Positions 108-44,786 of a stretch of 45,245 nt of DNA are shown piece by piece (the first letter of the stretch is position 1; each line of letters begins with the position of its first letter). Under the pieces are notes generated by a model. It ran no database searches and was not told where the DNA came from. It was given only the letters and a program-made list of their open reading frames with translations. The stretch covers positions 1 through 45,245 of the forward strand of contig CDMY01000599.1 of the NCBI GenBank assembly GCA_001179505.1, given 5' to 3'. The position numbers and the translations under genes were made by a program. This stretch comes from Vitrella brassicaformis CCMP3155. Lineage: Eukaryota > Protista > Chromerida.

Positions 108-2030
108 ATGTCTGATGGCGCTGATGGCGGGAAGCGCCAGCGCGTCGACGGCCCGGCTGCCTCAGGTAAGCCGAGAGAGATGGAGAGGATGGGGTGAAGC
201 ATGGTATGAACAGATGATGTGCTGTGTGTCGTCAGGTCATGGGATGAATGGAGTGTCATCATCGCAGCACCAGCAGATGGATGCCGCCCATGACGCATCG
301 GTGGGCCGTCTGTCCCATACACCTTTGAAAGGCCTTTGTGTGGCAGCACGACTGTGTGTGTCTTGTGTGTCTGTGTGCAGGCGGCCGGCTGTAGTCTTAG
401 TTTTGAGGAGGTGCAGCGGCGCTTCTCAGTGCTGCTGGCACAAGTGACACAGGTGAGGACGCGATGACGACACACATCCACACACACAGCTCGGCCGTGT
501 GTTGCTCAGGTGGAGTGTGATGTGACGACCATTGAAGGCTCGTTCGTCGCCAATGTGGCTCCCCAGGTCAGAGCCTTCATCCCATCACCACCGCCGCCAT
601 GACTCATTCTTCTCTGTCTGTGTCGATGGCCTCAGGTGCCGTCTGTTGCCTCAAACTGGTCCACCCTCAAGAGCAGCCTCTCGGCGACCTCTGACGCCCT
701 CACCGCCATCACAGAAGGCATGGCGGCCACTCACCCACCCCAGGCCCCTCCCTCACACCCCCACCCCTCCCCGCCAGATGCCCATGCCGCCCCCACTCAA
801 ACCACTGACACTACAGCTGCCGCTGATGCCGGCACTGCGGCTCGTCGCACAGAGAATCGCCTACCGTCGGATCTCTATTGCGACCACATCGTCGGCTTCC
901 TCCCTATCAGTGACGCCATCTGCCCGGCAAGGGCGGCAAACACTTTCTATGGTACCGAGCTCGTCGATGAGAACTTTGTGCTCGGTCGCATCGACACGGA
1001 CCTCGGCCGTCGGTCTCTGCGGGGCCTCATCGACGTGCAGCGCCCGACACTTGAGTACTACACCAAGTGCGCCCATACACTCGAGTACGGCGGGGTGGTG
1101 TGGTGTGAGTGGGCCGATTTCATCCGGCTGGCTGACATCTATAAGCTGACCGACGATCTGCCTCTGATCATGTCGACAGAGTGGATGGCGCAGCACTTCC
1201 GCAGTAAGGCCGACTTCCACTCGATGCCCGCGGCACTCCGCCAGTACAGCACATTCGGCCACCTTCTCAACTACAAGGGCACCAGTCTGGCGCTCACAAA
1301 GCTGGATGAGGCCGATGATGGCGGTGAGGGCAAAAAGGACAAAGAGGAGGCCGAGCCAATGGAGGAGGATGACGGTGGGGAAGGACAGGGCAATGGGGAC
1401 GGAGAGGAGGACAGGGAAGGAGAGGGCGGTGGGAGCGGGCAGATGGACGAGCCGATGGAGGGGGAGGGGGAGAAGGAGGATGGGCAGCGGTACCGCATCG
1501 GAGTCGGCGAGCACCAGTGGGAGTTCGAGACGGTGCCGCTGTCCGGCCTTCCTCCCCGCCATCCCTTCCGCCGCACATACGACCCCCACAACCCGCCCAT
1601 CCGCTACCTTGCCCGCTACCGCCATGGCTTGCTCTTCCCCTCGTTCACGGCCTTCATCCGACGGATGGTGTTGGCGGCCTGGTGTGGCCAAGAGGGGGTG
1701 GGCGAGAAGCGGGCATTTCGGGTGGGGAGGGTGGACGGCGGCGATGAGCGCTATCAGAAGCTGCTGACCGGCACTATCGAGGACCTCACCACCATCGACC
1801 TCATCTTGGAGACGAATGACGAGCGGGTGCGACAGATCGTGCTCAAGGGCATGAAGGAGGGCGACAGCATCGCTGCCCGCCTGTTGCTTGGCAATGGCTA
1901 CATCGAGCTCTACACGAACGAGGCAAGGATCGAGGGCCAGGAGAGGCTGCCTGACCGATTCCCCATCGCGATGTCCCTGGTCCGCCCTCTGCTGACCAAA
2001 CACGGACTCGCCCACCTCATACCGCAGTAG
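108..2030 (+). CDS. Lineage-specific multigene family member, copy 1 (F-box-like motif plus conserved C-terminal domain), apparently intact
   Basis: In-phase exon chain 108-165 (MSDGADGGKRQRVDGPAAS), 236-300, 381-452, 510-566 and 636-2030, all GT-AG. The 464-aa terminal ORF contains LPSDLYCDHIVGFLPISDA, FIRLADIYKL, FGHLLNYKGTSLAL and YDPHNPPIR, shared with the other copies. Confidence 0.85.
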
Positions 2031-2546
2031 AGACGACCAGACAGGTGAGCCGGGGGGAGGCAAACAGGCAGTGCCACACATGGTGGTCTGTGTGTGTGTG
2101 TGTGTGTGTGATGGTGTGCAGGTTGATTTCTTCCGAGTGTTGGCTGAGACTCTCAAGTAGATTTGCTGGATGGACGGCCTATCGAGTGTTAGCTGACGTG
2201 CGTGATCCATGTCTGTGTGAGAGGTGCATGACTCGCCTCTCCCAACTTAATTGATTGATCACTGCATGGAAGTGTCACTCACTCAGTCCATAGCCACACA
2301 GCTGTCCTATCAGCCAACCCCCTAGCCGCGCACCCATCGCTTCCACAACACCAAGCTGGTGTCACAGAGCTCCCTCCCCACCCTCATCACACAGTAATTG
2401 TGCACCGCACCCCGCCTCCACCAAAACAACTCAACCAGGTCATGGCCACGGTGCCTGCCACACAACACACACATAACCCATTAACTAAGGAATGGCGACT
2501 TCCTCCCCCTCGCTCCACCCCCCCAGCTGACCTGATTGGATGGGAT

Positions 2547-5282: not shown

Positions 5283-5360
5283 GTGTCAGCCCTGTTCCCG
5301 CCCATAAGAGCGGTTGAAGGCCTCACCAACAGCATCGTCATCGACGCGGGCGACCAGCCC

Positions 5361-5904: not shown

Positions 5905-5938
<34 letters not shown>

Positions 5939-10108: not shown

Positions 10109-10327
10109 CTTGGAGCCCCTCGCTGACGACAACAGCAAATACCGGCCGACGAGATCTGAGAGGCCCAATAACAGACGCTCTGGCACGGAAGGCTCGGGTG
10201 CTTCGAGACGCCAGGGACAGGCCGACGACAGGACTACCGCGCTAGGGTGCTTCGTCAAACCGCTGCCTTCGAGACGCTTCGAGTCGCGTTAAACACAATA
10301 AGCAAGGGGAGGCGGGGTTCTCATCGA

Positions 10328-12408
10328 GTAGCTCTGGTTTTGAGCATGAGTGTCGAAGGAGAGCCGAAGCGTCCCCATACACAACGCGGCGACTCGGCCG
10401 CGTCAGCTCAGCCCGGCGGCACACCGGTAAGCATCCGGGAAGCAATGTGCTGACAAGCGAACGCATTCACTCGAGAGAGCACACAGCAAGACCACTCACA
10501 TTCATCGTGTCTGTGTGTGTGCGTGTGTTGCAGTCCATCAGTGAGGGTTTGGTTCGTCTGGAGGAGCGCATCGCATCGCTGCACACACACATAGATCTGG
10601 CACGTGGCGCTTGAGAGGCCCAATGGCCTCACTGCTGGTGTGCTCTCATCCACTGTGTGTGTGTGCGGTGCCTGCAGGTCACACGAGAGGCTGCCGGTGT
10701 GCAGCAGCTCTTTGACACCACAGTCGCCGCACAGGTCAACCACACACACACACACGAGAGCACTGCAGCCGTCACTCTCTCCCTGGTTGTCTGTGTGTGT
10801 GTTCGGTGCAGGCGCCATTGGCGCCGATAAGTGGGTCAGCGTCTTCGCCGCTCTCTCGTCGGCTGAAGATGCGCTGCGCGGCGTCGACGATGGCGTCAAG
10901 GGCACCATTCGGCCCATCGGCTGGGCCAAGCCGCCCCCGCCCGCCGACTCGGCCGAGGGCCTGCCGCCTGATGTCTGCCGCGACGTCATCTACCGGTGCC
11001 TTCCCATCGATGAGGCCGTCTGCTCGGCCCGCCCCATCAGCAGGGCACACGGCAGCCAACTCGTCAATGAGGCCTTCGTGCAGCGTCGCATCGCCAAGCA
11101 CCTCAGCCGCCACTCGCTGACCGGCCTCATCGACGTGGAGCGGACAGCAGCAGATACAGCCAATGCCGCGGCACCCACCCCTGCCCCTCACACCAGCAGC
11201 AGCAGCAGCAGCAGTGACGCACCGGCCGCTGCTGGTGGTGGCGGCCCTCATGTGTCGCATTTCTGCTATCTGTCCCAGTGCTGCTATGCACTCGAGCATG
11301 GCGGGGCGGTGTGGTGTGAGCAGTGGCCCGACTTCATCCGGCTGGCTGACATCTACAAGCTGACGCCCTCGACTGGCCTGCCGCTGATCATGTCGGCCCA
11401 GTGGATGGCGACCCACCTGCCCACCAAGGCCGACTTCCACACCATGCCCCTCGCCCTTCGCCAGTACAGCACATTCGGCCACCTCCTCAACTACAAGGGG
11501 ACCAGTCTGGCGATCGAGAAGCTGGATGAGGCCGACGATGGCGACGAGGCCAAGAAGGGGGACGGTGGTGTGAGGAGGCAGCGCTACAGGATCGGCGCTG
11601 TCTACTTCACGATGGTGCCGCTGTCCGCCCTCCCTGCCGACAGCCCCTTCCGTGAGACATACGACCCCCACAACCCACCGATCCGCTACGATTGCCACCT
11701 CTTCCCCTCATTCACGTCCTTCATGAAACACCTGGTGTTGTTCGAGTGGTTTGACCCAAAGGGGGTGGACGAGAGGCGGGTATTTTGGGCGAGACTGGGT
11801 GGTGGCGATGAGGGATATCGGTCGCTGCTTACCGACGCCATAGACGGCAACACCACCATCGACTACACCAATGACGGGCAGGGGGATGACGGGCGGCAGC
11901 GACTCATCATCCTCAAGGGCATGAAGGAGGACGACACTATTACTGCCTACCTGTACCTAATCGATGGCAACATCAAGCTGTTCACGACCGAGGCGGCCAT
12001 CGAGGGCCACACGCGGCTGTCCGCCCGATTCCCCAGCGCGATGCCATTGACCCGCACCCTGTTGACAAAACACGGCCTCGCCCACATCATACCACAGTAG
12101 AGGAAACACACACAAGTGAGCCGCGGTGCGGAAGGGACATTCACAAGCACACAAGGGGCATGCCTTGAGTGCCCGAATGGCACTGGTGCGTCTCTCTCTC
12201 ACTCTCTCACTCTCTCTCTCTCGGTGTGTGTGTGTGTGCGTCTGTTTGTGTGCAGATGAGGTTGTTCGTCGACTGGTGCTGCTGGCAGTGGAGAAGCTGG
12301 CAGCGGTGTGTAGGCTGATTGTGGAGGGCTCACTTCTTGCAGCGACATGTGATGAGATGGGATGGACGGGCGCGGTGTCGTCTGCCGACATCTGTACATG
12401 TACAGTAC
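10328..12408. repeat. About 2.1-kb segment duplicated in inverted orientation at 42700-44805
   Basis: Exons, introns and about 300 nt of 3' flank are highly similar to the reverse complement of 42700-44805 (for example gcatgagtgtcgaaggagagccgaagcgtccc and gacatctgtacatgtaca). The middle of the terminal exon is the exception. Confidence 0.85.
10346..12100 (+). CDS. Multigene family copy 2; long ORF intact, but the 5' exon chain has a 1-nt phase conflict
   Basis: Exon 1 starts at ATG 10346 (MSVEGEPKRPHTQ). Small exons at 10534-~10600 and 10678-10734; terminal exon 10812-12100 with LPPDVCRDVIYRCLPIDEA, FIRLADIYKL and FGHLLNYKGTSL. Confidence 0.75.
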
Positions 12409-12690
12409 ATGTCGTCTGTAAGTGCGTTTATACGGCACACATCATCCTTTACTGCGGTGTTTTGTACGCCCACATCATACCGCAGTAGAGGGGGGGAGAC
12501 AATGCAAGTGAGGCAGATGATGACGGCGGTGTGCGGATGTGTGTATGTTTATTGATGACATTGTGCTGCTGCTCCTGTTATTGAGATGGAGAACCGTCTG
12601 CACTGACTGCATCGATCCGGCCCCAAATCCTCCGGGGTCACAAACCATCAGTTCGCCCCTCGCGAATTCTTCGGAAATCTTCCATTTCTC

Positions 12691-15712: not shown

Positions 15713-17299
15713 TCACCCCCACCGTGGTATGATGTGGGCGAGTCGGTATTTGGTCAGCAGGCTGCGCAGCAACGGCGCAGAGATGGAGAGCTGGTCCTCC
15801 CACGGCGTGTGACCCTCGATCTCGGCCTCGGTCGCGAAGAGGATGATGTAGCCGCGGCAAACCCACAGGTACGCAGCGACGGTGTCGTCTTCCTTCATGC
15901 CCTTGAGCATGATAAACCGTTGCCGCTCCCCCTCCTCGATGAAGTCGATGGTGGCGTGCCCGTCGATGGGATCGGTCAGCACTCGCTGATAGCGCTCATC
16001 GCCACGGCCCACTCCAACCCGGAACACCAGCTTCTCGCCCACCCCCTCTTGGTTAAACCACTGCGTCAACACCATCCTCTTCATGAAGGCCGTGAATGAG
16101 GGGAAGAGGAAGCCATGGCGGCGGATGGGCGGGTTGTGGGGGTCGTATGTGCGGCGGTAGGGGTGGCGGGGAGGGAGGCCGGACAGCGGCACCGTCTCGA
16201 ACCGCCACTCTTCCTCGCCGACTCCGATGCGATACCGCTGCCGTGTCACCCCACCGTCCCCCTCTCCCTCTCCTTGGCTGCCCCCCTCTCCATCCCCCTC
16301 TTTGCCCTCACCGCCATCATCGGCCTCATCCACCTTTGTCAGCGCCAGACTGGTGCCCTTGTAGTTGAGGAGGTGGCCGAATGTGCTGTACTGGCGAAGG
16401 GCGAGGGGCATGGTGTGGAAGTCGGCCTTGGTGGGCAGGTGGGCCGCCATCCACTGGGGCGACATGATCAGCGGCAGACCAGTCGAGGGCGTCAGCTTGT
16501 AGATGTCAGCCAGCCGGATGAAGTCGGGCCACTCACACCACAGCGCCCCGCCGTACTCGAGTGCATGGGCGCACTTGGTGTAGTACTGAAACGGCCTCTC
16601 CACGTCGATGAGGCCACGCAGAGACCGCCGGCTGAGGTCCGTGTCGATGCGTGTGAGCATGAAGGTCTCATCGACGAGGTCGATGCCGCTGGTTTTGTTG
16701 GCCGCCCGTGCTGAGCTGACGGCCACGTCGACGGGCAGGAACCGAGTCACGACGTCACGGTACAGATCCTCGGACAAAGGATTGGCCGTACCATTGTCCG
16801 TGTGGGCTGTTGTGTGTTCGGTGTGAGTGGCGGCGGGATGGGCGGCTGGTGGGGAGGGGTGGGAGGGAGGGATGGGGGATGGGTGCATCGCTGCCAAGTC
16901 GTCATTGAAGGCCGCGAGGGCACTGGAGACCACCGAGAGGCTGTTGACGAGGGCAGAGGGTATCTGAAGTCACTCAGCACAGACAGTCTGCGCTGAGGGT
17001 AAAGGCGCATCCACCTAACCTCGACAGCCGCATTGTGAGAGTGTGAGCGCTCGATGGTCACAAGCCCGTGCTCCGCCTGAGCACATACAAACAAACAGAT
17101 GGACTGCCCTCGCCCGTCTAAAGATGTGTGTGTCCACAGCCCTTACCTGTGTGAGGTGTGTCTGCAGCACTGAAATCTGTCGCCGAAACGCATCAACACT
17201 ACAGCTACTGGCGGCCGCCTGCACACAACACAAGACACAGTCACAATGGACGCACCATCTGGAGAGCCCGCCCACCGATGGGTCGTGAGAGAGATCCAT
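15713..17299 (-). CDS. Multigene family copy 3; spliced frame intact, true start unresolved
   Basis: Phase-0 exons of 66 nt (FGHSWDEG...DPS), 72 nt (AAASSCSVDAFRRQISVLQTHLTQ) and 57 nt (AEHGLVTIERSHSHNAAVE), then a terminal exon IPSALVNS...LAHIIPRWG*. No ATG was found on this strand in 17401-17700. The nearest in-frame ATG is at 17299. Confidence 0.75.
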
Positions 17300-17732
17300 T
17301 GGCGGCTGCGATGCAGTACCCTCATCCCATGAGTGACCAAACTGACAAATGACAGCACATCATCCCATATTCCGCAGGTGCCTCGTCATATATAGATGAC
17401 TCACCGGCCTGTCCGCACGGCGACGGTCGGCGTGGTCAGCAAGATACGGCTTGGATCTCAGTTGTGTAGCCGTGCAGCGTCCTCCCGACACCACCGGTAT
17501 CACCTCACGGAATCGCAGGAGCGAGTCGGTGGCCGTGCTATAGCCCTCCTGGTCGTTGCTGTACGCCGCAGAAAGGCCTCCTTCCTTCCCTTTCTGTGCC
17601 TCCTTCCCTCCCGATCGACTGAGGATCGAATCGGCGTCGCCTGCGAATCTGGCAAATTCGTTTTCCGATTTTGTCGGCTGAGAGGCTCCTTCAGACGCCC
17701 ACACACTCACCTCTGTGAAGAAACGCCGAAAA

Positions 17733-18885
17733 ATGGCGCAGAAAGAGGCGAGATCAAAGCTCGGAGGTGGTGAGGAGATTACCGACGCCGGCAAGGGTAA
17801 GACGGCGACACAGGTGAGAAGGGAAGAAACCTCGGATGCCTTCTATGGTGTTTGTCGCTTGTTTGGCTCAGATCTGACGTATTTTCGTGCTGAGGGTGCA
17901 ATCACTGGCTGTTGAGATGTGGCGTGAAGGTGCATTGCCTGGCAGTGACCGACTTGGTGGCTCTGCGGACCTGCTGTCGCGCCGTGGGGAGCTCTGTGGT
18001 GGCCGCTGCTGTGCTGGTCCATCGCATCGACGCCTCCCTCGCCCGCCACTCACCGGCACCTTCTGTGCCTGATGATGATGTCTGTCGGCCTGAAGGCCTT
18101 GTCGGTGCCAGTGTTGCCTGCGCCAAGCGGCTGACGGCACGGGCCTCACGGTGGATGACAGGCCGATAGTCGCTGGCGCCCTTCGGCTACCTGGTGCGAT
18201 GCTGTTACGTTCTGGATGAGGGCAGCAGCGAGTGGCGTGTGATGGGCACAATTGTGTGCTTGGCCGCCACCTATCGGCTGTGGCTCATCTGCCCAGCAAG
18301 ACGGCCTTCCACAAGCTGTCGCTAACAGTGGCCATCTACAGGACCATCGAGCATCAGCTGAGATGCTTTGTAGGGAGCCTGATGTTCGAGCAAGCCGACA
18401 ACGGCATCCTATATGCGCTGGTGAAGTGGGCACGGCGACTGCGGGAGTTTGTAGCCCCCGGTCCGGCGGCCGCCGGACTCTATCGGATTGGCGGCTGTTG
18501 GTCTTTCGATGTGGTGCCTTATCATCAGCCGTCCGACAACCACTTCTTGCTCCTCCTACAAGACTACTGATCCCGTCACTCGCACAGCATGCCCACCGTG
18601 CGCTGTCTTCCCTCGTTAGGCCATATACGCTGGTCTGTCTCCTTTTGGTGGTCTCATCAAGAGGGAGTGCATCAAGAGGTTTGGCTGGTCACGCGGCTGC
18701 CGACCTGACGACACCGTCGCCGCATTTGTGGCGGTGAGGGATGTGAGCATCTAATTGGTCACAGCCGAGGTGCCTGCTGCTGCTGGTCGTGTGTGCCTCA
18801 TCGGTGGATGTGCGTTTCCCCACGTCGACTCCCCTTGTGGCGCCGGGCTGCTGAGGCGGTTTGGGCTGAGGTGATGTCATCCATT
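17733..18885 (+). pseudogene. Degraded, divergent member of the same family (copy 4)
   Basis: Exon 1 MAQKEARSKL...TATQ|GT. Homologous fragments: HRIDASLARHS (cf. RRIDTHLSRHS), FGYLVRCCYVLDEG (cf. FCYLSQCCYVLEHG), HLPSKTAFHKL..IYRTIEHQL (cf. HLPTKADFHTM..QYSTFGHLL), WWSHQEGV, RFPTSTP and LLRRFGL. These are broken by an in-frame TAG at 18167-18169 and several frameshifts. Confidence 0.75.
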
Positions 18886-23400: not shown

Positions 23401-26400
23401 CCTGTGCTGTGTTCGTGTGTGTGTTGGTGTGTGTGTGTGTTGGTGTGTTGGTGTGTTGGTGTGTTGGTGTGTTTGTTCAGGTCACATATTGAAGATCTTT
23501 GTGGACAACCCTTTCCCCGTCACCCTCATCAAGCAAGCCACGACAGTCAGATGCCTGGACCTCAGCGTGTCAAGGAAAAAGGTGATATGAGTCCCCACAC
23601 ACACATACACTCACACATGGATGGATGGATGTGTCATGTGTGTGTGGACTGGACAGCTGGCGGTAGTGGACGAAACGGCCAACATGTTGGTGTACGACCT
23701 GGACAGCAAGCAGCTCATCTACCAGGAGCCCAACGCCAACTCGGTCGCCTGGAACACAGAGATGGAGGACATGCTCGCATACAGCGGTCAGTCAGTCAGT
23801 CAGCCAGTCAGTCCACACACACTCACACACAGAAATCCATTCGCACGTACGTGTGTGTGTGTGGGGCTCATCCTCCCTCTCTCTCTCTCTCTCCCCCTCT
23901 CTATTGGATGCTTTCAGGCAACAACACGCTGTGCATCAAGACGGGCACCTTCCCCCCACACACGCAGAAGCTCCAGGCAACCCCCTCCCCCGCCCCGCCC
24001 CTCTCCCAACGCACACGCAATGCTCTGACTGACCATCCCTCTCTCTCTCTGTCCGTCCACCAGGGCTTCGTTGTTGGGTTCAAGGGTTCCAAGATCTTTT
24101 GTCTGCACTACGTGTCCATGCAGACTATCGACGTGCCGCAGTCGGCCTCCATGTTCAGGTACCTCGACCGCAAAGACTTCCACACCGCTTACAGAGTCGC
24201 CTGCCTCGGCGTCACCGAGAGCGACTGGAGGGCCCTCGCCATCAACTGCCTCTCCAGCTTCCAATTCGATCTCGCCAGGAAGGTAAGGTACCCACGAGAG
24301 AGAGAAGGAATCATGTGTGTCTGGATTGCGTGTGGTGTGGTGTGGGTGGGTGTGTTGTGGATGGTTTGGTTGTTTGCCGTGAGTGAGTGCAGGCGTTCAT
24401 TCGGATTCGCGACGTGCGGTATCTGGACCTGCTGACGCGGCTGCAGGCGAGCTACGGCAAGAAGAAGCAGCTCACGCAGGAGGAGGAAAACATGATCCTC
24501 GCACAAGTGCACGCCATTCAGGTGCAGTCACTGCACCTACCCACCCCCACACACACCCGACACACCCGACACACCCACGGCCCGTCCATCCATTCATCCA
24601 TCCACCCCATCTGGCGTCTGTCTGTGTATCTATCAGGGGCAGTACAGAGAGGCGGCGGAGCGGTTCCTCAAGTCGGGTCAGCCCAAGCTGGCCGTCGACA
24701 TGTTCACCGACCTGCGCAAGTGGGACGAGGCCAAGCAGTGGGCTGCCATCATCGAGAAAGACGCTCTCACACAGAAGGGTAAGCTACGCAGGCAGGCCTA
24801 TGTCACTCTCCCCCCACCCACGCAACGCATCGCATTCCCTCTCCAACTTTTCCTTTGTGTGTGCAGCGGCGCCCCCGCCCCTTACTGCAGCAGCAGCAGC
24901 AGCATCGCCGCTGAGAACCGAGGAGAGGGAGAGGGAGAGGGATGGTGCCCCCGCACCACCCGCCCCTGGTGCGGTGTTGGCAGCGGCCCCTGCACTGAGT
25001 GTGTCGGCGTCTGATGTCGGCAAGCAGGGGGCCGTCCTCACACCCGTCGCACACCTTCCACCACCTGCCGCCGCCGCTGCTGCTGCTGCTGCTGCTGCAC
25101 CAGCAGCAGTCAGCAAGGAGCCAGAGGATGGTGGCGAGTCGATGGCGCAGGGGCTGATCATGCTGCAGGTGGGGGAGTCGGTTGGGCACAGATGGATGGA
25201 CGGATGGCAATCTATCTGGTATGGGCGGTGTGGTGTGCAGGCTGTGACGTCAGAGGAAGATGGAGATCTCCGGAGTGCCGGCGAGATGTACTTCAAGGCC
25301 GGCAAGTATCGCAAAGCCGTCGAGATCTTCATCAAGCTACAGGCGGTAAGAGCCAAGGCCTCTCCCCGTCCCTCTCCCTCCCTCCCTCCATGTGTGTGTC
25401 TGTGTGTCAGTTGGAGCCGTTGATAGAGGTGGTGCGTCACCTTGTGGCCGCGGGCGATGTGATCGGCAGCAGGGCACCCCCCAGCGGCCTCAGCGACAAA
25501 GACGTCCGGGAGCTGCTCGCCATGGCCGCAAAGCTGTTCAGGCAGAAGGGACACTTCTCCTTCGCGAAGGTGAGAATGTCTGTCTGTGTGTCCATGGCGA
25601 CCACACACACACAGGGACAGTCCAATGTGTCCGTGTGTCCGTGTGTGTGTGTGTGGGGGGGATTGGTATTGTCTGTCAGGAGACGTTGCTCAAGCTGGGT
25701 GACATCGGTCAGCTGATGGGTCTGTACGTGGAGATGCACCGGTGGGAGGAGGCATTCGGACTCGCCGAGCAGTACCCCCAACACGCACACGCCATTCATC
25801 TGCCCTGGGCGGAGTGGCTCGTCACACAGGACGGGTAAGGTAGCAACTGCACACATACACACACACCACGTGTGTGTGGACTGACTTTGTGTGTGTACTG
25901 TACGTGTCTGTCAGGTTCGACGAGGCGCGAGCGGCCTACGCCCAGGCGGGCCGTCGGGATCTCTCCCTCTCCCTCCTCCACACCCTCACCACCAACGCCG
26001 TCACGGAGCGAAGATTCAAAGTAGGTCACGTCACCTACACACCCATCCAATCCACGTGTGTGTATCTCACCCTCTGTCCTCTCTGTGTGTGTTGTGTGTC
26101 AGGATGCGGCCCGTTACTACTGGTCCTTGGCTGTGGAGAGCGTGCAGAGTGCGGAGTCGGCCACGGGCAGCAGCCATGACGACGAAATGGCCAGAAGACG
26201 GGTATGTGTGTGGTCGAGCCACTCAGGCGGCATCTCTCTGTATGTGTGTGTGTGTGTGTGGTGCGTGTGTGTGTGTGTGGATGCGTTACACACAGGGTGT
26301 GTCGCAGTTTTGGGAGTATCGTCGGTATGGCGAGCTGTACTACGCCTTCGCCATGATACACTCATTCATGAGGGAGCCCTTCACACAACACACACAAGGT

Positions 26401-28448
26401 AGGTATTGTCTGCCTGCCCGTTTATCCATCCATCCGGGTGTGGTGTGGTGTGGTGTTTGTGTGCGTGTGTTGGTTGATTCAGAGCAGCTGCTCAACGCCA
26501 CGCTGTTCCTGTGGAACATCCTTGCATCACCGGGGCTCACAAGGCCAAAACCCACATCACACAAGTGAGTGAAGTGAACACACCACATCCCCACACACAC
26601 TCACACACATACACTCCAACCAACGCCCATCTCCTGCCTGCCTGCATCCCTCCTCTCTCCTTCGTGTGTGCAGGGGCGTTGACGCGACACACAACACCGT
26701 CACAGCATTCCTCAAAGGCAAGTCGTCAAGTCAGCACAGCTCACGCACCCACACAGCTCCCCTCTACACCAACCAACACACATCCACGCTGTTGCTGTTG
26801 CTGTTGCTGTTGCGTCTCGTGTGTCATCAGAACGGGCAGAGGCCTCCGGTGCAGGTGTGGGTGTGGGTACTGCTGTGCGGCCCACGGTCTCTGGCGCCGG
26901 TGCAGGAGGGTGGTCGGCCAAGATGGTGCCGCCGGGCATCTCCCGCGCCGCCATCCTATACGCCATGGCCAAGAAGGCACAGGCACTCGACGCCGCCAAG
27001 CTGGCAAGATTCGCACACGACAGACTCCAGGTAGGAAGGGTCAGGTGTGTGTGTGTGCGTGTGCGTGGATCGTGATGTGTGGTGTGTTGTCAGGAGGTGC
27101 GTCTGCCTCCGAAGTGGCAGAATGAGAGCGACATTGCCGCACTGCAACTGCGGGCCAAGCCTTACATCGTATGCACACACGCGGAGAGGGAGAGAGAGGG
27201 AGAGAGAGGGAGAGAAGGAGAGAAAGAGGGAGGGAGCGATGAGTGCAGGTGTGTTGTGTTGTGTTGTGTGGTTTGTGGGCAGGACAACGAGGATTTGGTG
27301 CCGATTTGCTACCGGTGCATGGGCAACAACCCTCTGGTCAGGACCAACCTCGACTCGTGCGCCCACTGCGGCCACCCGTTCGTGCGCGACTTCCTGTCTT
27401 TCGAAACCCTCCCTCTCGTATGTATGCCATGCCCTCACTCACACACATCACATCCTTCATCCCATCCTCCAATATCCCTCTCTCTGTGTTGTGTGTTTGT
27501 GTCAGGTAGAGTTTGTGCCCGATGGTGTGGATGACGACAGCGCCATATCGGCCATCAACGAGGAGCCGCCTCACCTGCTCAGACACATCCAGGAAGACTC
27601 CACCGACGGGTAGGTGATGTGACATTATGCGGGCGGCACACCCACCACACCACCCCACACCCCACCACACACACGCCTCAATCACTGTGTGTGTGTCGGT
27701 GTTGTGTTGACCTGCCTGTGTGTCGTGCCAGGTGGAGGGAGGGCCGAGCCGCCGGCGGCGGTGGTGGTGGCGGTGGTGCAGACACCCTGACGCTCGACGT
27801 GGATGTCGGCGGACACCATGGCGGCATCAACGACGGTCAGCCAATACACACACACCCTGACAGACATCCGCTCATCAGTCAGTAGTCAGGCCGCGCGTGG
27901 TGTTGTGTGTGCGTGTGTTGGTCTGTGTGGTCAGATGAGTCGGATCCCTTTCTGTCCAAGATGGAGGAGGCGATGAGCATGGCGGTGCCGGGCGAGCCCT
28001 ACCGACCCATCCCCGTAGACATCAGCTCACTCAAAGCCATGAACCCAGAACTCGTATGTAAACCAAAGCCTCCCACTTCACATCCCCACCCAACGGACAG
28101 ACAGACGGACACTCATCGATGTCTCTCACACTGTGAGAGTGTGTGTGTGTGTGGATGGATGGATGGATGGCAGGTGCACATAGTCGACTACCGGCGTGTG
28201 AGCCCTTTGCTGCCGGTGTTGTACTACCGCTGCATGATCCCCGAGGTGGCCTTGTCGGTGAGCCACACGTGCGGGCACTTCTACCACCAGCAGGCCATAG
28301 AGGAGGAGCTCCTCAGCACACAGCAGTGGCCCTTCTGCGGAACCACCGTACGTAATGGTGGATGGATGGCACACAGACAGACAGACGAGACGGGGATGGA
28401 TGGATGTGTGTGTGTGTGCGTGTGCATCTGCAGGAGATTGATCCCTAG
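20487..28448 (+). CDS. IFT122: Intraflagellar transport protein 122 (IFT-A; WD40 repeats, TPR-like region, C-terminal zinc-binding motifs)
   Basis: Dozens of short exons spelling [12 protein letters not shown]..., [141 protein letters not shown] and ending EIDP*. Confidence 0.95.
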
Positions 28449-28773
28449 CTATAGCTCGCTACCTTTGTGGAGTGACGGCGGACGGCAGACAGGTTGTGCG
28501 TGTGGGAAGGGGAGTGTTGTGCGCTGTATAGCTAGCTGGTTGTATTATATGTGTGCATGTGGATATCAGTGTGTGTACTGATTGGTTCCGCAATTCTCTA
28601 TGCCGGCGACTCGACTGACTGGCAGTCCCATTCACTGGTCGAGGTTCCTGATGCCATGAGTCCATGTCCCCCGTCAGTCAGTGTCCTCGCACTCAACCAC
28701 AGCCCAGCCGGGCCGGGCAGACCACACACACACACATCACCACATCTCACACACAATACGGAGTCATCGGCCA

Positions 28774-31700
28774 TCAGGATAAGAAAAACGATGCCCCCAC
28801 ACCGACCACCAGACACACCCTGACACCAGACAGACACACACCCCAAACTGAAGTGTGTGTGTGTTGGGAGGGGGGAGAGGGGGGGGGGGGGGGGGGNNNN
28901 NNNNNNNNNNNNNNNNNNNNNNNNNNNNNNNNNNNNNNNNNNNNNNNNNNNNNNNNNNNNNNNNNNNNNNNNNNNNNNNNNNNNNNNNNNNNNNNNNNNN
29001 NNNNNNNNNNNNNNNNNNNNNNNNNNNNNNNNNNNNNNNNNNNNNNNNNNNNNNNNNNNNNNNNNNNNNNNNNNNNNNNNNNNNNNNNNNNNNNNNNNNN
29101 NNNNNNNNNNNNNNNNNNNNNNNNNNNNNNNNNNNNNNNNNNNNNNNNNNNNNNNNNNNNNNNNNNNNNNNNNNNNNNNNNNNNNNNNNNNNNNNNGGGG
29201 GTGGGGGGGGGGGGGGGGGGGGGGGGGGGGGGCGTACGCTGTGATGAGCAGGGGCCGTGTTTGTGTGGCGTGTCCACCAGGTTCGACCTTGTAGCCCAAT
29301 TTCTTGAGCTTATCGACGGCCTGGTCGGTGTCGAGCTGGTCCTGCTTCTCCTGCTGCGCGTCCGTCATCTCTGCAGGCAGCCCACCAACCAACCACACAC
29401 ATAGGACAATGTCTCCGAGGGCGTGTGTATTTGTGTGTGCGCAGGGGAAGGGGGAGGGGGTGTGGGTGTCTGTCTGTCTGACTGATTTCGTTGTCGACGT
29501 TGACGGAGAGGGCCTGTTTGGAGGCAACCATGCCGGTCACCATCTTCTGGAGCTGCACGTGGGCACACACGCATACACACACGCACACACACAGGGTTTG
29601 ATGCAGGTGGCCACACCACACACCAGGTGGTTAGCTTACTGTCTTGAGAAGAGTCTTTTCCTCCTCGTTGAGCTGGTCGAAGTCATCCTGCTTCTTCTTT
29701 ATCCTTCACACACACACACACACACACGCACAGGCCATGTCTCTCACCGCAGCCATAGCCCCCCCCCCCCCCCCCCCCCNNNNNNNNNNNNNNNNNNNNN
29801 NNNNNNNNNNNNNNNNNNNNNNNNNNNNNNNNNNNNNNNNNNNNNNNNNNNNNNNNNNNNNNNNNNNNNNNNNNNNNNNNNNNNNNNNNNNNNNNNNNNN
29901 NNNNNNNNNNNNNNNNNNNNNNNNNNNNNNNNNNNNNNNNNNNNNNNNNNNNNNNNNNNNNNNNNNNNNNNNNNNNNNNNNNNNNNNNNNNNNNNNNNNN
30001 NNNNNNNNNNNNNNNNNNNNNNNNNNNNNNNNNNNNNNNNNNNNNNNNNNNNNNNNNNNNNNNNNNNNNNNNNNNNNNNCCCCCGGCCAATGCCGATTTA
30101 TGTGTGCGACATACATACAGGTCTTTCGTGTAGTTGATTTCGTCCCCCACTGTCTTTTTCTTCTTGATGAGTCCGTTCATCTGGTCCACAATGATTTTGT
30201 TCTTGCCCAGCCACTTCTGCAGGTCCATGCTCGCCATCTGCGTCTGGCTCGGCAGCTCGCCGTGCTCGCTCCCATTCAACTTGATCTCACCCACCCTCTC
30301 CAGACCGGGGGGCGGCTTCGGAACCTCACTAGCCTTCTGCAGCGTCTCGTCCGTGTGCTTGACCTGCTCGGCCAGCTCCTTATCGGCCTGCTCAGCGGCC
30401 TTCTTGGTGGCATTTGCTGCTGGTCCTGTGGGAGCGGCTGTTTGTCCTGGTGGTGGTGGTTGGGGGGGCTCTGGTGCTGCCGTGGCTGGTGTGGGCGGCG
30501 TTGTGGGGGCGGCGGCTCCTGTGCCTTCTTTGTTGCCGGCTGGTATTGCGGCTGCCGGTGGTGTCTCCGGCTCTTTCTTCTCCCCATCCTTGTTTTCAGC
30601 AGGCTTCTTCTCAGCTGATGGCTTTCCACTCTCTTTGGACTCTTTCTTCTCTGGCTCGTTCTCGGCTGTAGGGGATTTGTCAGCACCAGCCGGGGCGGCG
30701 GCCCCTTGGCCCTTGTCCTTCTCCTTCTCCCCAGCGGCCTCCTTGACTTCCTCTGGTGTCAGGGACGTAACCTGCGGCAGCTCTGGAGGCAGTGTTTGGT
30801 CATTGAGGCCCTGCGGGTCGGTCTGCTTGTCCAGCGGCGCCTCGGGCGCTGTTTTTGCTGCTGCTGGCTGTGCTGCTGGTGGCTGTGGCGGGGTTCCTGG
30901 GGCAGCTCCAGGGGCGGCGGTAGCGGGAGGGACAGGGGTAGCGGGCTTGCCCTCGTCGGGCTTCTTCTCCACCTCTTTTGCTGCTGGTACTGGTGCTGGC
31001 GGCTCCTTGGGATGTTCGGCAGGTGGTGGGTTGATTGTTATCCACTCGCCGCCCTGCTGCTTCTCAGCTGGCACCGGGGCATTGGCCGGTGGCAGCTGCT
31101 GCCCTGGCTGGCTGGCTGCTGGTGCTGGTGGTTGTGCTGCCGGGGAAGAAGGAGAGGCTTGTGGAGGTTGGCCGGGTGGCTGGTTCGGCGGTGGCTGCTG
31201 TGGTTTTGGATTTGCTTTGGGGTCGACTGGCGGTTTGCCTGATGATGATGCAGAAGAATTAGACAGACAGGCAGGTAGCTATGCGCCCCTCATGTGTGCG
31301 CCTTCACCTGCATCGGTGGGCTGTGGGTTGGGGGCTGGGGCTGCCTGAGGCTGGGGCTGGGGAGGATTGGGCAGCGGCGCCTTCTCGTCGCCTTGCGCCT
31401 CCTGAACGAACACCATGCAAGCCAGCCAGCCGCACACACAGCATTGCGCTATTCATTATACGGGAGCTTGTAGCCAGCCAGCCGCTTACCTCTTCCATGG
31501 TCATGACCTTCTCGTCATCGCCGACCTGTTTGCTACGGTGTGTCCGCAGCAGACCGGTGGACGAACCTGAAACCAACAGCCATGGAGGCACATTGCGGTT
31601 CAGCATGGTTCAGCTTCTACCTACCCGCTGGTCTGGCGAGCGTCTGTGGCGGCAGCTGTCTATCAAGATGACCAACAGTGGGAAAGAGCCGTCTCACCTG

Positions 31701-37634: not shown

Positions 37635-38127
37635 CGGGAGAAGCTGTGGCACAAAACAGAAAAGCGAGAAAAGCGAGCTAAGCTTGCAGACGGGGGATCG
37701 CTTCCCTGGGGCTTCAATCTCATCCATCCGTCCAAGCGTCCGTCCGTCTGTCTGTCTGTCTGATCGATCCATCATCATGGGGCGCCACTGGCTTCAAAAA
37801 CAGGAATGTAGCGAGTGAGTATGCAGGCCATCTCATAGATGGATGGATGGACGGATGGATGGATGGAGGTATGCAGCACGCCGCACCAAATAAAGGAAAG
37901 GAAGATAGGCAGACAGTCAGTCAGACAGACAGATATGTCACTTACTGTTGTTATCATACAGGCTGTCTCACTCACTCACGCGTTCATGTCACGGACCGTC
38001 AACACCCGTACTCACACACACACACACACACAAAAGGACACGCAAAAGGACACACAGACAGCCATCATTGTCTCATCCCCCCACCCCGTGTGTGTGCGTG
38101 TGTGCATGTGTGTTTGCAGTCCGTCGG

Positions 38128-40363
38128 TCAGAATGCCGCCATGCCGGCTGACAGCGATGCCCCCGGGACGGACCTCTGCCGCTGCAGACGCACAACCTGC
38201 ATCGCCACGAGAGAGAGCAAGGCATCCATCACATCACCTGCCTGTCCGCACACACCCTCCCTCCCTCAGGCTTCCTTTGGTCACCTTTGCTTTGAGCTGG
38301 CGGATCATGAAGGCCTCGCGGCTGGTCTCACGCACACTCTGAGCAGAGAGGCAAACCACGCACAAACGGGGCAATCCAGTGTCTGTTTGGGCGTTTGGCG
38401 TCCATGAGCTGGCTGACCTGCAGGAAGTCGGCGAGGTTGATGATGCGGTCCTTGAGTGCCTCGTCCAGTTTGTCCAGCATGTCCTCCTGAGACGCCACGT
38501 CGGCCGACAACTCCATTATCCTACGCAAATCAAATCAACACACAGAAAGACCGACAGGAACGAAATACACCGCAGGCTGTGGCTGTGGCAGTGGCAGTGG
38601 GCGGCACTGACTGTTTGGAGAGGGCATTGCTGGGCTCGACAATCTCATCCGCCACAAACTGCACACACCAACAAAGGCAGGCGACTCTCTCTCTCTCTCT
38701 CTCTGTGGGCCCTCCCTATGTTCGCTCTAGTTTATGGTTTACATACCTTTCTGTGTTTCTCGGCTTCCATGAATGTGTTGACGGCCTGGTGCGTGGCGTC
38801 CAGCGCCTCCATGTCACGATCGATGGACGCCTGACAGACGGACGAGTCGACGGCACACAGATTGCATTGCCCGTGTCGGTCGGTCGGTGTATTATGCGGT
38901 CAATCGGTGTTTCTCTCTCACCGATTCCTCCTGCAACTGCGCCAAGTGAACCCCTATCCTCCTCCCAAAAGACTCCCTCTGATCCTGAACCCAAACAACA
39001 CAACACACACAAGCTCCGGTGAAGACGACACACGTACCCCCCTGCCGTGTTCAGTTCACACGTACGCACCTGCATGTCGAGCTGCTCATCCAGCCGCGAT
39101 ATGATCGGCTGCACCACCCTCGGCCACCTCTCCTTCACTGCATTTGGACAGCGACAGTACAGAAAGGAACACAGACATCCCCATGCCCTTTGCTCGCCCG
39201 CCCGCCCATCGATCGACCCCCGGACTGACCTTGTTTCTCGACGTCTTCCCTCAGTATGTCCTCCCTGGACCGTGCCGGCTGTGAGGGCTGGGCAGCAGAT
39301 GCGCCAGACGAGGGCAGCACAGAGGGGCGGCCGGGGGAGGCGGTGGACGAGGAGGGCTGCTGGGAGGGGGACCCACCGCTGCCCGCCGGCTGGCCGCCCT
39401 GGGCAGCCATGCCCAAATTAGACATCACGAAACCAGACGCTGGCACAGCACAACACACAGACACGGAAGCGATAAGCAGGATGTCAATATGTGTGTGTGG
39501 TTGTGTGTGTGATTGTCGCGAACCTTTGTTGAAGAGCGAATTGACAATCCCACCAATTCTGCCATCCCTGAATGGGGGAAAAGAACAAACAAAAACTCCT
39601 TCGGGTGTCCCCCGATTCAGGCCCATGTGCGTACGGTGGCTGCGATGCCGATCCGCCAGCGGCGGCGGCGGCCGAAGGTCGGTGTTCGGTCGACGATGAC
39701 GACGACGACGAGGCGCTCGTCTGGGCCGAGGCCGGCTTGGAATACACCGGCGGGTCAGTGCTGAACGTCGAACTGATGATCGTCATCAACTCAGTCTGAC
39801 CGACACACAGAAAGAGAGCCGCACATGACCCACATCACATTCACATGTGTGTATCTCTCTGTGTGTGCGTGCCCCTCCCTCTCCTCTGCCCACCCCACCA
39901 GGGTTGACTGTGAGGGGTTCCAGGAGGCCAGGTACGGGAGGTAGATCATGCCCTTTGAGTCGACGTGCTTGTGGCGCGGCTTGATGGCCATGTTGGCTGT
40001 GGGCGAGACGAAGCACCGCGGGCCTGAGTTTGGGTAGGGGGGGTCGAGGTAGATGGTCACGGGGATGTTGTACTGGGCGCCGTTGTAGTAGATGGGGATC
40101 GTGCCGTACAGGTAGAAGAGCTTGATGGAACGACCCTGGTTACCTGATGGATGGTAGTTGTAAGGGGAGGAAAGATTCACACACGTAGGTGTGGAGGCTC
40201 TGGCGTGTTGTGTGCATGGTGCTGTGCTGGCGTAAGTACTGAAGTCGCCCACACTGGGCCTGAGAGAGGTGACTTGCGACATGAGCTGCTGGACGTCCCT
40301 CTTGACGCGGTGGAGGTTGCTGTAGAAGCCTATCTGGTTCCATAGCTGGTTGTACTGATACAT
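38128..40363 (-). CDS. TSG101: ESCRT-I subunit TSG101/Vps23 (UEV domain, low-complexity linker, coiled coil, steadiness box)
   Basis: UEV: LFYLYGTIPIYYNGAQYNIPVTIYLDPPYPNSGPRCFVSPTANMAIKPRHKHVDSKGMIYLPYLASW...FSTDPPVYSKP. C-terminal SB-like ADVASQEDMLDKLDEALKDRIINLADFLQSVRETSREAFMIR. Stop TGA at 38130-38128. Confidence 0.92.
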
Positions 40364-40689
40364 GCTGCCGACCACAGCCCACGAATGGCTCCACACGCCT
40401 CTGCTGACTGCTCGAGGGAAACGTTCACGAACCAAGAAGAGCGATCTCGCCGAAATATGTGACAAGGGCCATAGCACTATCCTGCCCTTATCGCTTTTGC
40501 CTGTCCGAATTCCAAACGGACGAGGCGATCCCTCGTAGCTCGCGGACGCAAGCTAAGGTCGCGCTTTTGTTTTTTCTGAGCCTTGCAGCGCCCCTGCAGC
40601 TCCTGCAGTGCACTTTCCAGCTTGATCTACCGTCGCTGACATCTTTCTGCCGTTGGCCCCAGAGCAACCACTTCTGTGACTGACTTCCG

Positions 40690-41919
40690 ATGGCGTCCCA
40701 ACCTCCCGGTCATCATCTCACTCAGCAGCCCTCTCGTCATGAGCCCACGACCACTCCTCCCCCCTTCCCATCCCTGGTGACACTCGCAATCAAGAAGGCC
40801 GCTCACATGGCCAAGTCGGATGAACGGCAACGCGACGAGCTCCGCTCGCAGATCATCAACAGCTCTATCGCTGATGTGGAGGTGATGCTGGGGCTCGTCA
40901 AGCAGCACATACAGGAGGCGATGAGCCGTCTTGGCCTCGAGGATGTCTTGACCTTCACGGTTTGTGACCTGGAGGGCGCCTGGGAGGTGGCCTATTTGCT
41001 GGAGCAGGACAGCGGCACGTGGCGGCTCATTGGGCAATTCATCCGCCTGGCGGCCATCTTTCGGCTGACCCCAGCCACCGGGCTGCCCCTGCGCGTATCG
41101 TCAGAATCCCTTCCCAGACAGTCGGCCTTGCACCCGCCCCTCGCAATCGTCATCTATCAGCTGTTCTCGCATCAGCTGACGGTCAATGGACAGAGGCTTT
41201 CCCTGGAGCCAGGGGTCATATCTCCGCTGACGAGATGGACGCTTCAAGTGAAAGCGTTGCTTGGCGACTCTCAGCCAACCAACAAAGGAGGGGCGTATCG
41301 GATCGGCGAGATGTTCTCGCTTCGGGCGGTTCTTTACGGGGAGTTGCCTGCCGGCCATCCCTATTCTGCCACCTACAAGGAGACTGACCCGCCAATCCGC
41401 TGCGGACCCTGGCTTTGTGCCTCCTTCACGGCGTTTCTCCTTTGCTGCCTGGGTACGTGCTGGTCTGGAGAGGCGGCAGTGAGCAAGGAGAAAGTGCTGC
41501 ATGCGCACATCGGCGACATGGATCCTCGCTATGAGAGGCTGCTCACTGACGACATCCCCGAGCAGCAGGGCGTCTCAGTGGACTAGCGGCATGACGGAGG
41601 GAACCTGAATGCAACACATCCATCGGCCCATCGTATTGTGCTCGTGAGCGGCTTTCGACCTCACGAGACTTTCACCGCCCACGTGTCAGTGGCCGGCGAA
41701 TCCATCGATCTGTACACCACCGAGTCCCGTGCTATTGCTCCATCAAGGCGCCACTTTAGTGTTTCCATTCCCATGTCGCTACACGAGTGGCGCGTTGCAG
41801 TGTGGAACGGTTTTCCAGCGTCGATGCCGAAGTGGCGAGGGGTGTGAAGGGAATTTGGCTTGAAGCAGCAGGTCATCGAGAGAGGGACAGTGATGTTGAG
41901 AGGCCATTATTGGTTCTGA
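40690..41919 (+). pseudogene. Intronless divergent family member (copy 5) with two in-frame stop codons
   Basis: One reading frame with no frameshift: FIRLAAIFRLTPATGLPL, YQLFSHQL, ETDPPIRCGPWLCASFTAF, VSVD*RHD (TAG 41584-41586), DLYTTE, NGFPASMPKWRGV*REFGL (TGA 41845-41847), final TGA 41917-41919. Confidence 0.75.
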
Positions 41920-42986
41920 TTAGCTGGGCTGTCGCTAGGGCGTAAGCTGTGTGGTGAGGCAACTCGATCTCGAGAGTAATGTTATTGACGGGGGGACGGT
42001 GCTGGTGTGATGGTGTGAGGTTCGCCGAGCAGCCGCTAGGGGATTGGGTGTTTGTTCTGTGTCACGACACGACCGAATGCCGAATGAGCTGTCATGATTG
42101 TTGGTCTCTCTCGTCGATGCTTAGTGTGTCCAGCTTTCTGACTAGTACTCGATGTGTTTTTTTTCCGCCAAGAGCTACGATGACGTCAAAGTCGGATGTG
42201 TGCTGGGGGGATGTGTGGGTGGAGTGTTATCGGACAGGCTGGGGGATCGCATCGAATGCGTGACGCACTGGTTGCGTTGCTAATATGGTGAGAAGACAAA
42301 GTCAGGCAGTGACGTCAACATACACAAGCAAGTCAGCACTATGAATGTGGTTCATACGCTTCCCGATGTCTGTCTGCCTGCCTGAGACAACGAAGCAGAA
42401 GAGCACACGACATCACAACACAGCACATAACTGATCACATCACTGCAGGTTTGGGGTGGTGGTTTTGCTGGATTGCTGCTGTGTGTGTGTCATCGATCTG
42501 ATCTGATGTGGTGCGTCTAGGGGAGGCTGGCCTGCGCTCTGTGGCTGGGGGTGAGCATGAGTGCGCGTATGAATAGATATCTGTGGACACGGACAGTTGG
42601 ATTGGACTGGATGTGAGTGAATTCGCCCACCGTCAGTCAGTCAGTGTATCATGTTCACACATGACCACTCATTCTCACACATGGCCGGACGACGTGGACA
42701 TGTACATGTACAGATGTCGGCAGACGACACCGCGCCTGTCCATCCCATCTACTCACATGTCGCTGCAAAAAGTGAGCCCTCCACCATCAGCCTACACACC
42801 GCTGCCAGCTTCTCCACTGCCAGCACCACGAGTCTACGAATCAACTCACCTGTACACACACAGACACACACACACACACCCCGAGAGAGAGAGAGACGCA
42901 CCAGTGCCATCCGGGCACTCAAGGCATGCCCCTTGTGTGCATGTGAATGTCCCTTCACCACCGCGGCTCACTCGTATGTGTTTCCT

Positions 42987-44786
42987 CTACTGTGGTATCA
43001 TGTGGGCGAGGCCGTGTTTCGTCAACAGGGTGCGGGTCAATGACATCGCGATGGGGAATCGGCCAGACAGCCGCGTGTGGCCCTCGATGGCCGCTTCGGT
43101 CGTGTAGAGGAAGATGAAGCTGCCACCAAGCCACAGGTTGACGGAGATGGTGTCGCCCTCCTCTGTGCCGTTGAGGATGATAAATCGCCGCCGCCCAGCA
43201 TCCCCCACCTCAGTGTAGTCGATGGTGGTGTGGCCGTCTATGGGGTCCGTCAGCAGCGACCGATACCGCTCATCGCCATCGCCTACTTCCCCCTCGAATA
43301 CCTTCTTCTCGCCCACCCCCTCTTGCTGATACCAGTACCACAACACTATCCACTTCATGAAGGTCGTGAATGAGGGCAAGAGTAAGCGAGCGTGGCGGAT
43401 GGGCGGGTTGTGGGGGTCGTATGTGCGGCGGTAGGGATGGCGGGGAGGGAGGGCGGACTTGCGCACCGTCTCGAACTGCCACTTGTGCTGGCCGCTTCCG
43501 ATGGTATACCGCTGCCGTGTCACCCCACCGTCCCCCTCTCCATCCCCCCTCTCGGCATCCTTTTTGCCCTCATCGCCATCATCGACCTCATCCACCTTTG
43601 TGAGCGCCAGGCTGGTGCCCTTGTAGTTGAGAAGGTGGCCGAATGTGCTGTACTGGCGAAGGGCGAGGGGCATGGTGTGGAAGTCGGCCTTGGTGGGCAG
43701 GTGGGCCGCCATCCACTGGGGCGACATGATCAGCGGCAGGCCAGTCGACGGCGTCAGCTTGTAGATGTCAGCCAGCCGGATGAAGTCGGGCCACTCACAC
43801 CACAGCGCACCGCCATGCTCCAGTACATAGCAGCACTGGGACAGGTAGCAGAAATGCGACACATGAGGGCCACCACCACCAGCTGCAGGGGCCGGTGCGT
43901 CACTGCTACTGGTGGTGGGATGGGCAGGGGTGGGTGCCGCAGCATTGGCTGTGTCTGCTGCTGTCCGGTTCACGTCGATGAGGCCGGTCAGCGAGTGGCG
44001 GCTGAGGTGCGTGTCGATGCGACGCTGCACGAAGGCCTCATTGACGAGTTGGCTGCCGTGTGCCCTGCTGATGGGGCGGGACGAGCAGACGGCCTCATCG
44101 ATCGGCAGGCACCGGTAGATGACGTCGCGGCAGACATCAGGCGGCAGGCCGTCGGCCGAGTCGGCGGGCGGGGGCGGCTTGGCCCAGCCGATGGGCCGAA
44201 TGGTGCCCTTGACGCCACCCTTGACGTCATGCCGCGCATCTTTAGCCGACGAGAGAGCGGCGAAGACGCTCACCCACTTATCGGCGAGAAAGGGCGTCTG
44301 CACCGAACACACAGACAACCAGGGAGAGAGTGACGGCTGCAGTACTCTCTCGTGTGTGTGTGTGTGTGTGTGTGTGGTTGACCTGTGCGGCGACTGTGGT
44401 GTTGAAGAGCTGCTGCACACCGGCAGCCTCTCGTGTGACCTGCAGGCACCGCACACACACACACAGTGGATGAGAGCACACCAGCAGTGAGGCCATTTGG
44501 CCTCTCATGCGCCACTTGCCTGTTCTATTGTGTGTGCAGCGATGCGATGCGCTCCTCTAGACGAACCAAACCCTCACTGATGGACTGCAATACACACACA
44601 CAATCAGCACGATGAATGGACGTGTGTGCGCTCTCTCGAGTGAATGCGTTCGCTTGTCGTGCTGTGTTTGCTCTCTGGCCTGCTTGAGTTCGCTTCTCGA
44701 TTGATGCTTACCGGTGTGTTCTCATTTGCAGCGGCCGAGTCGACGCCTTGTGTGCGGGGACGCTTCGGCTCTCCTTCGACACTCAT
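42987..44786 (-). CDS. Multigene family copy 6; long ORF intact, 1-nt deletion and TAG in exon 2
   Basis: ATG at 44786 (MSVEGEPKRPRTQ). Small exons at 44584-~44516 and 44439-44383; terminal exon 44297-42987 (TPFLADKWVSV...LAHMIPQ*). Confidence 0.75.

Follow-up and report, generated by a model that had tools for sequence, protein, structure and literature searches.

Why does a single contig of Vitrella brassicaformis CCMP3155 (CDMY01000599.1, 45,245 nucleotides, with a G+C content of 59%; this whole stretch of DNA is the window) carry six copies of one gene, and what might the encoded proteins do? A preliminary description, made from the letters of the DNA, had reported six homologous loci at successive stages of decay. 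Five long open reading frames (ORFs) of the window align mutually over their full length, and tblastn with the long ORFs as queries against the window indeed returned six homologous loci, the sixth being a broken locus at approximately 17.9-18.9 kb. These loci, here called copies 1 to 6 (Table 1), contain all the shared motifs that had been listed for them (FIRLADIYKL, HLPTKADFH, YSTFGHLL, DPHNPP, FPSF, and FPIAM), and the motifs are still recognisable in copy 4, which is dead. Amino-acid identity is 44-75% among copies 1, 2, 3, and 6, and 24-34% between copy 5 and these four. A genome of 72.7 Mb with at least 120-180 loci would be expected to have approximately 0.1 copies in 45 kb, against the six found here. 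We propose that the loci are members of an F-box family confined to Vitrella, whose products are candidates for substrate receptors in SCF (Skp1-cullin-F-box) ubiquitin ligases and whose genes evolve by birth and death with gene conversion, a reading to which we assign a probability of roughly 0.7.

The F-box assignment concerns a conserved N-terminal motif, LPxDv..rdVi..lP, of which the stretch LPPDVCRDVIYRCLPIDEAVCSARP is F-box-like by eye. When the genome was scanned in six frames with PF12937, only 18 F-box-like sites were detected in its 72.7 Mb, and at 3 of them (2 on contig C859 and 1 on contig C983; contigs and public proteins are given as C and P numbers) the downstream sequence has the family motif FL..RI...S..GLT. 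A hidden Markov model (HMM) of the family (alignment A4) matched the C859 ORF with 90.7 bits (E 3e-27), from the LP motif through YvLE.GG.W, FGHLL, and LP..HPY...Y...DPV.R. In Pfam the same ORF matches both F-box-like (29.1 bits) and F-box (28.4 bits) at residues 26-67; the members on C859 and C983 reach 28-29 bits, above both Pfam cut-offs (20.5 and 24.3 bits), and their Pfam-positive site lies at the position homologous to the LPxD motif of the window copies. In addition, hhalign comparison of the motif region of 86 members with 11 Vitrella F-boxes from proteins outside the family gave a score of 19.7 (P 1.8e-4) with 31 columns in register from the LP dipeptide (2-34 vs 2-32); in the controls, 200 column shuffles had a mean of 5.1 (standard deviation 1.1, maximum 8.5) and the reversed alignment scored 7.0. 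The F-box-like motif is kept in 86 of 121 members. F-box-like is also the commonest weak Pfam match among these members (4 of 121, all sub-threshold) among the matches listed, which are those of the first 25 of 51 families, and 3 family members bear the UniRef name 'F-box domain-containing protein'. A language-model feature search of a protein atlas, which we take as a lead only, ranked F-box clusters first (score 0.86). Finally, the AlphaFold2 (AF2) model of P0006, the public protein of copy 6, places helices 97-107, 110-120, and 122-128 where the three helices of an F-box are expected, with predicted local distance difference test (pLDDT) values of approximately 79-96. The canonical Vitrella F-box proteins (PF12937/PF00646) have in common with the family the LP...I/V...L...R pattern and an in-register profile alignment, and three of the Pfam-positive sites themselves belong to the family; the canonical set amounts to approximately 15-18 sites at or near the Pfam threshold, to which the family adds at least 86 cryptic F-box-like proteins.

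Several observations weigh against this interpretation. Pfam found no F-box in the window copies at E <= 1-10, LS replaces the LP dipeptide of the motif in copy 3, and the motif of copy 5 is degenerate. Searches of PDB sequences with family-alignment profiles retrieved no F-box protein, and the fold searches listed no F-box structure for residues 95-144, a region barely tested in searches that other parts of the model dominated. Moreover, no transcript records were seen for the four window genes themselves. Taking both sides together, we consider that the conserved N-terminal motif is, by profile comparison, a divergent F-box, which would place the family among the SCF substrate receptors. The earlier statement that no named domain family could be recognised for the core agrees with the lack of a Pfam match there, but in this reading the family does have a named domain in its N-terminal motif. 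Skp1 itself was found at 2-3 loci of the genome, one of which has an in-frame TAG inside the match.

Sequence searches found no established family for the core that follows the F-box. Among the matches listed, Pfam has no family for it in the window copies or the 121 members, NCBIfam gave no match for it, and neither did the sequences of the PDB when two family profiles and one member served as queries. Pfam matches to TrAA12 were weak, fell on an acidic low-complexity loop, and were discarded. The AF2 model of P0006, built with a 121-sequence alignment, has a pLDDT of 84.5 and a predicted template modelling score (pTM) of 0.76. In it, two long N-terminal helices (residues 25-76) come before the F-box helices (97-144), after which a disordered insert leads into an alpha/beta domain. 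The core by itself (42993-43874, minus strand) was modelled with a pLDDT of 93.1 and a pTM of 0.90. Foldseek searches of the PDB with the whole and core-only models found nothing at E <= 0.001. The exhaustive fold search with VIA-align divided the core into two lobes; the sole matches of lobe A were three SUKH-superfamily structures, the F-box protein FBXO3 among them, and a second-look fold search of the PDB gave further neighbours of lobe B only. In these models lobe A bears a weak resemblance to the SUKH domain of FBXO3 and lobe B a similarly weak one to a TBP-like fold, a likeness of architecture and possibly of fold, not of membership. As far as prediction can tell, the two-lobed core is an undescribed domain that folds confidently.

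The likeness of lobe A raises the alternative of a core that is a strongly diverged SUKH domain and that mainly binds and neutralises, or flags, foreign proteins (e.g., toxins of associated bacteria), the F-box being secondary or vestigial. 2ICG and 2PRV are named as SUKH structures, and the secondary structure of the core (approximately four helices and six strands) fits the description of SUKH domains (PMC3113570). In the atlas feature search, moreover, the second-ranked cluster combined fungal SUKH-4 with an F-box-like domain. However, the SMI1_KNR4 and SUKH-4 Pfam models (PF09346 and PF14435) gave no match anywhere in the genome at E <= 1, although for PF14435 the control genomes were blank too and its null in Vitrella carries little weight. 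Furthermore, no SUKH family is among the listed Pfam and NCBIfam matches of up to 121 members, the atlas search with lobe A alone gave no usable match, and the retention of the F-box-like motif in most members argues that the F-box is in use. We consider this alternative unlikely. FBXO3 is a conserved gene that is not known to have more than one copy per genome or to form an expanded family. The Vitrella family differs further from the FBXO3/SKIP16 type (F-box, SUKH, and ApaG-type domains; PDB 9kbf) in having no detectable SUKH sequence relationship and a C-terminal lobe with a weak likeness to TBP, whereas that of FBXO3 is an immunoglobulin-like ApaG/DUF525 domain.

The size and range of the family were determined in the genome of V. 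brassicaformis CCMP3155 (72,700,666 bases in 1064 contigs) and in protein collections. Copy 3 as query gave at least 183 matches in the genome (102 scored of 313 candidates) and the family profile at least 122 (89 scored of 440 candidates), with clusters of copies on C55, C240, C274, C292, C350, C377, C440, C471, and other contigs. An exhaustive HMMER search of 1.84 billion protein representatives returned 120 clusters at E <= 0.001. We looked up 30 of them, taken among the weakest, longest, shortest, and mid-range matches; all those with an organism name were Vitrella, and a few others came from JGI or ENA. A word search with a broad profile gave 32 matches, all from Vitrella except one JGI protein that shares 95% identity with a locus on C691. 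The members from JGI or ENA assemblies (P0149, P0089, P0120, and P0086) could belong to another strain of Vitrella or to a relative in the environment. Scans of viral contigs and of metagenome contigs found no relative of the family, and Foldseek found no match to the family models among the viral structures of BFVD. The family is restricted to Vitrella, which agrees with the lineage specificity that had been proposed for it. Transcripts of the MMETSP collection match several members, which shows expression of some members at least. In some gene models (P0130, P0025, and three with TPR domains) the core stands together with BTB_2 and TLDc, TLDc, ubiquitin, CBM_25, or TPR, either through true gene fusion or because models were merged. 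One distant member, whose core match is weak (E 1.5e-4), has a BTB domain in place of the F-box; in Cul3 ligases, BTB plays the corresponding adaptor role.

High copy number, clustering, many broken copies, and confinement to one lineage are also what a selfish gene would produce, the copies either riding on a mobile element or being one. Against this, the DNA shared by copies 2 and 6 (10326-12416 vs 44807-42688) extends from approximately 20 bp 5' of the ATG to approximately 300 bp past the stop codon, and BLAST of the window against itself found no repeats flanking the copies. The small 5' exons and the intron positions are conserved between copies, and among the Pfam matches listed for the window copies and the 121 members there is no significant transposase, integrase, or reverse transcriptase. 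In addition, transposable elements make up only 1.5 Mb in Vitrella (PMC4501334). Because the repeat unit is the gene with approximately 300 bp of 3' flank, we reject the transposon explanation, which appears highly improbable.

The copies are under constraint. The ratio of nonsynonymous to synonymous substitution rates (dN/dS) is 0.58-0.68 in pairwise comparisons among window copies and, for the long subfamily, 0.60 across 15 full-length copies, which indicates constraint, but of a relaxed kind; the N-terminal helices evolve near-neutrally. A scan of the 15 full-length copies for positive selection (Nei-Gojobori method, windows of 20 and 9 codons) gave local ratios of at most approximately 1.7, and the windows with the highest ratios had a very low proportion of synonymous differences, probably as a result of gene conversion. 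Because no window had a convincing dN > dS, we do not claim diversifying selection for the long subfamily. The link to defence or conflict that had been suggested for the family is still an analogy, given an overall ratio of approximately 0.6 and no robust positively selected patch in this subfamily. The high ratio, the near-neutral helices, and the state of the window copies, two of the six being clearly broken and two more having 5' lesions, might alternatively mean that the loci are the decaying relic of a past expansion in which some frames are unbroken by chance. This is improbable, since dN/dS stays far under 1 in ORFs 1.2-1.4 kb long whose divergence amounts to a dS of 0.2-0.5, dozens of full-length open copies exist, the alignment holds coevolution strong enough for a model with a pLDDT of 93, and several members have matching transcripts.

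Exchange of segments between copies is visible within the window. Copy 6 is a mosaic: its 5' half and 3' end are 91-99% identical to copy 2, and its middle (approximately 43550-43400) is 85-91% identical to copy 3 and only approximately 72% to copy 2. In the aligned DNA, this mosaicism reveals gene conversion between paralogues. A block of approximately 150 bp has at least 97% DNA identity in copies 2, 3, and 6 (11274-11420, 16430-16578, and 43690-43838, respectively) and encodes FIRLADIYKL...HLPTKADFH...YSTFGHLLNYKG; elsewhere these copies differ by 20-30%. The block, at 43690-43838 in copy 6, points to recent gene conversion or to constraint that would reach silent sites too. In a maximum-likelihood tree, which gene conversion may have distorted, the four intact window copies are not mutual sisters: copy 1 groups with C471:38.7k, copy 2 with C262:51k (support 98/96), copy 6 with C91:57k (support 95/87), and copy 3 with C262:92.5k and C440:12.4k. 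C262, C440, C471, and C91 hold clusters with the sub-types of the window (copy-1-like, copy-3-like, and copy-2/6-like). Because several scaffolds hold the same sub-types, the arrangement suggests that whole gene clusters may have been duplicated. On C471 there is also a head-to-head pair, 38.7k(-)/41.3k(+), like the pair formed by copies 3 and 4. The family turns over by duplication, segment exchange, and decay through frameshift and nonsense mutations, and all stages are present within the window; the clustering, pseudogenes, and gene conversion seen here bear out the rapid turnover first proposed from the window.

If the F-box family is what we propose, its proteins could work as follows. 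The basic N-terminus, which resembles a nuclear localization signal (PKRPRTQ in copies 2 and 6), would direct them to the nucleus, and the two long N-terminal helices may mediate receptor pairing, as some SCF receptors pair. The divergent F-box, predicted to have three helices and followed by a linker helix, would dock on Skp1, and the family-specific two-lobed alpha/beta domain of approximately 290 residues would hold a protein for ubiquitination, an acidic loop of highly variable length that is inserted in lobe A being part of this putative substrate-binding domain. The family has expanded to well over 100 loci through duplication of the gene-sized unit and, probably, of whole clusters, with paralogues swapping segments by gene conversion and single copies dying by frameshift or nonsense mutation. 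Lineage-specific F-box expansions are found in nematodes (FBXA/FTH and FBXB) and plants (FBA, FBD, and kelch families). The Vitrella family resembles them in having the F-box N-terminal to a family-specific substrate-binding domain and in comprising hundreds of clustered paralogues that evolve by birth and death, with many pseudogenes, in one lineage. It differs in that its C-terminal domain is unrelated in sequence to FTH, FBA, kelch, LRR, and WD40 domains, its F-box is too divergent for Pfam in most members, no robust positive selection is seen in the long subfamily (15 copies), and the expansion has no obvious match in Skp1, with its 2-3 loci.

On this reading, the family would change the view of the ubiquitin system of Vitrella, which would have well over 100 F-box proteins and not approximately 15, equipped with a substrate-binding domain found nowhere else. 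Standard annotation would have missed nearly all of these F-boxes, the proteins being recorded as 'unnamed protein product'. Among free-living photosynthetic organisms, chromerids are the nearest relatives of apicomplexan parasites. Apicomplexan F-box proteins are hard to detect by sequence alone (Toxoplasma F-box paper, PMC11570480), and the main text of the genome paper mentions neither F-box nor ubiquitin (PMC4501334). A further and doubtful extension of this proposal is that the two-lobed module is a new recognition domain and the family an SCF-based surveillance repertoire specific to Vitrella, large and quickly diversifying, whose receptors tag foreign (bacterial or viral) or selfish proteins for degradation, conversion among clustered paralogues creating new specificities. 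If true, this would be a system like innate immunity in a free-living relative of apicomplexan parasites. The family also offers a new, confidently foldable domain for structural and ligand work, and a compact natural case of the birth, conversion, and death of putative receptor genes.

Table 1. Copies of the family in the window and their parts.
Feature	Position	Strand	Details
Copy 1, intact gene	108-2030	+	exons 108-170, 229-300, 381-2030; public protein P0004, 548 aa
Copy 1, F-box-like motif	861-1010	+	
Copy 1, lobe A	1050-1700	+	
Copy 1, lobe B	1701-2027	+	
Copy 2	10347-12100	+	P0012, 479 aa
Copy 2, main exon	10812-12100	+	intact
Copy 2, F-box-like motif	10961-11110	+	
Copy 3	15713 to ~17300	-	P0001, 548 aa
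Copy 3, main ORF	15713-16957	-	intact
Copy 3, F-box-like motif	16628-16777	-	
Copy 4, pseudogene	~17939-18874	+	frameshifts near 18280 and 18500; in-frame stops at 18167, 18617, 18752
Copy 5, divergent	40690-41847	+	premature TAG at 41584-41586, before lobe B; P0073, 298 aa
Copy 6	42987-44786	-	P0006, 480 aa
Copy 6, main exon	42987-44297	-	intact
Copy 6, F-box-like motif	43998-44147	-	
Copy 6, lobe A	43314-43874	-	
Copy 6, lobe B	42990-43313	-	

The state of the single copies was judged by reading the 5' exons individually and by using the public gene models as spliced proteins. These models have small 5' exons upstream of the main exon, and the intron positions are common to copies 2, 3, and 6, with GT-AG or GC-AG borders; in copy 3 the small exons are separated by GT-AG introns. 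Copy 1 reads through its three exons and is intact, as previously described. Its stretch 381-2027 is a single exon where copies 2, 3, and 6 have two short introns (compared at 10534-10812, 16957-17220, and 44297-44584), and copy 1 seems to have lost both introns because the exon is continuous across the two positions. The 1-nt lesions that had been noted in copies 2 and 6 are both real, but they do not imply inactivation, since they fall in small 5' exons and the gene models avoid them by skipping an exon. The small exon 2 of copy 6 reads CACACACAATAG and its counterpart in copy 2 reads CACACACACATAGAT; copy 6 thus has a 1-nt deletion, which results in an in-frame TAG at 44527-44525, and P0006 omits this damaged exon. 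In copy 2, the start of the main exon (10812 onward) has 11 nt before GCCGATAAG compared with 12 nt in copy 6, so that the frame would be shifted if exon 3 were joined to exon 4 in the manner of copy 6; P0012 leaves out exon 3 and takes a different donor. Both lesions lie in short exons 5' of the F-box and may be bypassed, so that inactivation is not required.

Copy 3 had been described as intact with an unclear start. Its main ORF is open, and the first exon of its public model, P0001, lies at 17971-18027 on the minus strand, antisense within copy 4. This exon is probably an annotation artefact, which accounts for the earlier uncertainty and would make the first approximately 80 residues of P0001 spurious; the ATG of 'MDLSHDPS' near 17300 is a more plausible start. 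The heavy degradation reported for copy 4 was found again, with its two frameshifts and three stops. Two nonsense codons had been assigned to copy 5. One of them is an internal TAG (41584-41586), at which the annotated product P0073 stops without its last lobe, in-frame homology continuing beyond it to 41847, but a second is obtained only by counting the TGA that lies three codons upstream of the ATG of this copy.

Ten ORFs of the sequence neighbouring the copies were also scanned. Two runs of N (28897-29196 and 29780-30079) lie between copies 4 and 5, outside all copies, and affect only the estimate of spacing because no copy is touched. Both gaps are within a low-complexity stretch (28598-31348) whose flanks translate as poly-Pro or poly-Gly, and a minus-strand ORF at 29683-31074 is rich in P, A, E, and K and has no Pfam match. 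Conserved genes lie alongside the copies. Exons for the intraflagellar-transport protein IFT122 occupy 23260-28581 on the plus strand, where the second beta-propeller is above the Pfam cut-off and the start of the TPR domain (E 6e-15) is below the cut-off for the whole protein. A gene with a UEV domain (TSG101-like) lies at 39791-40477 on the minus strand (Pfam UEV, 1.5e-28).

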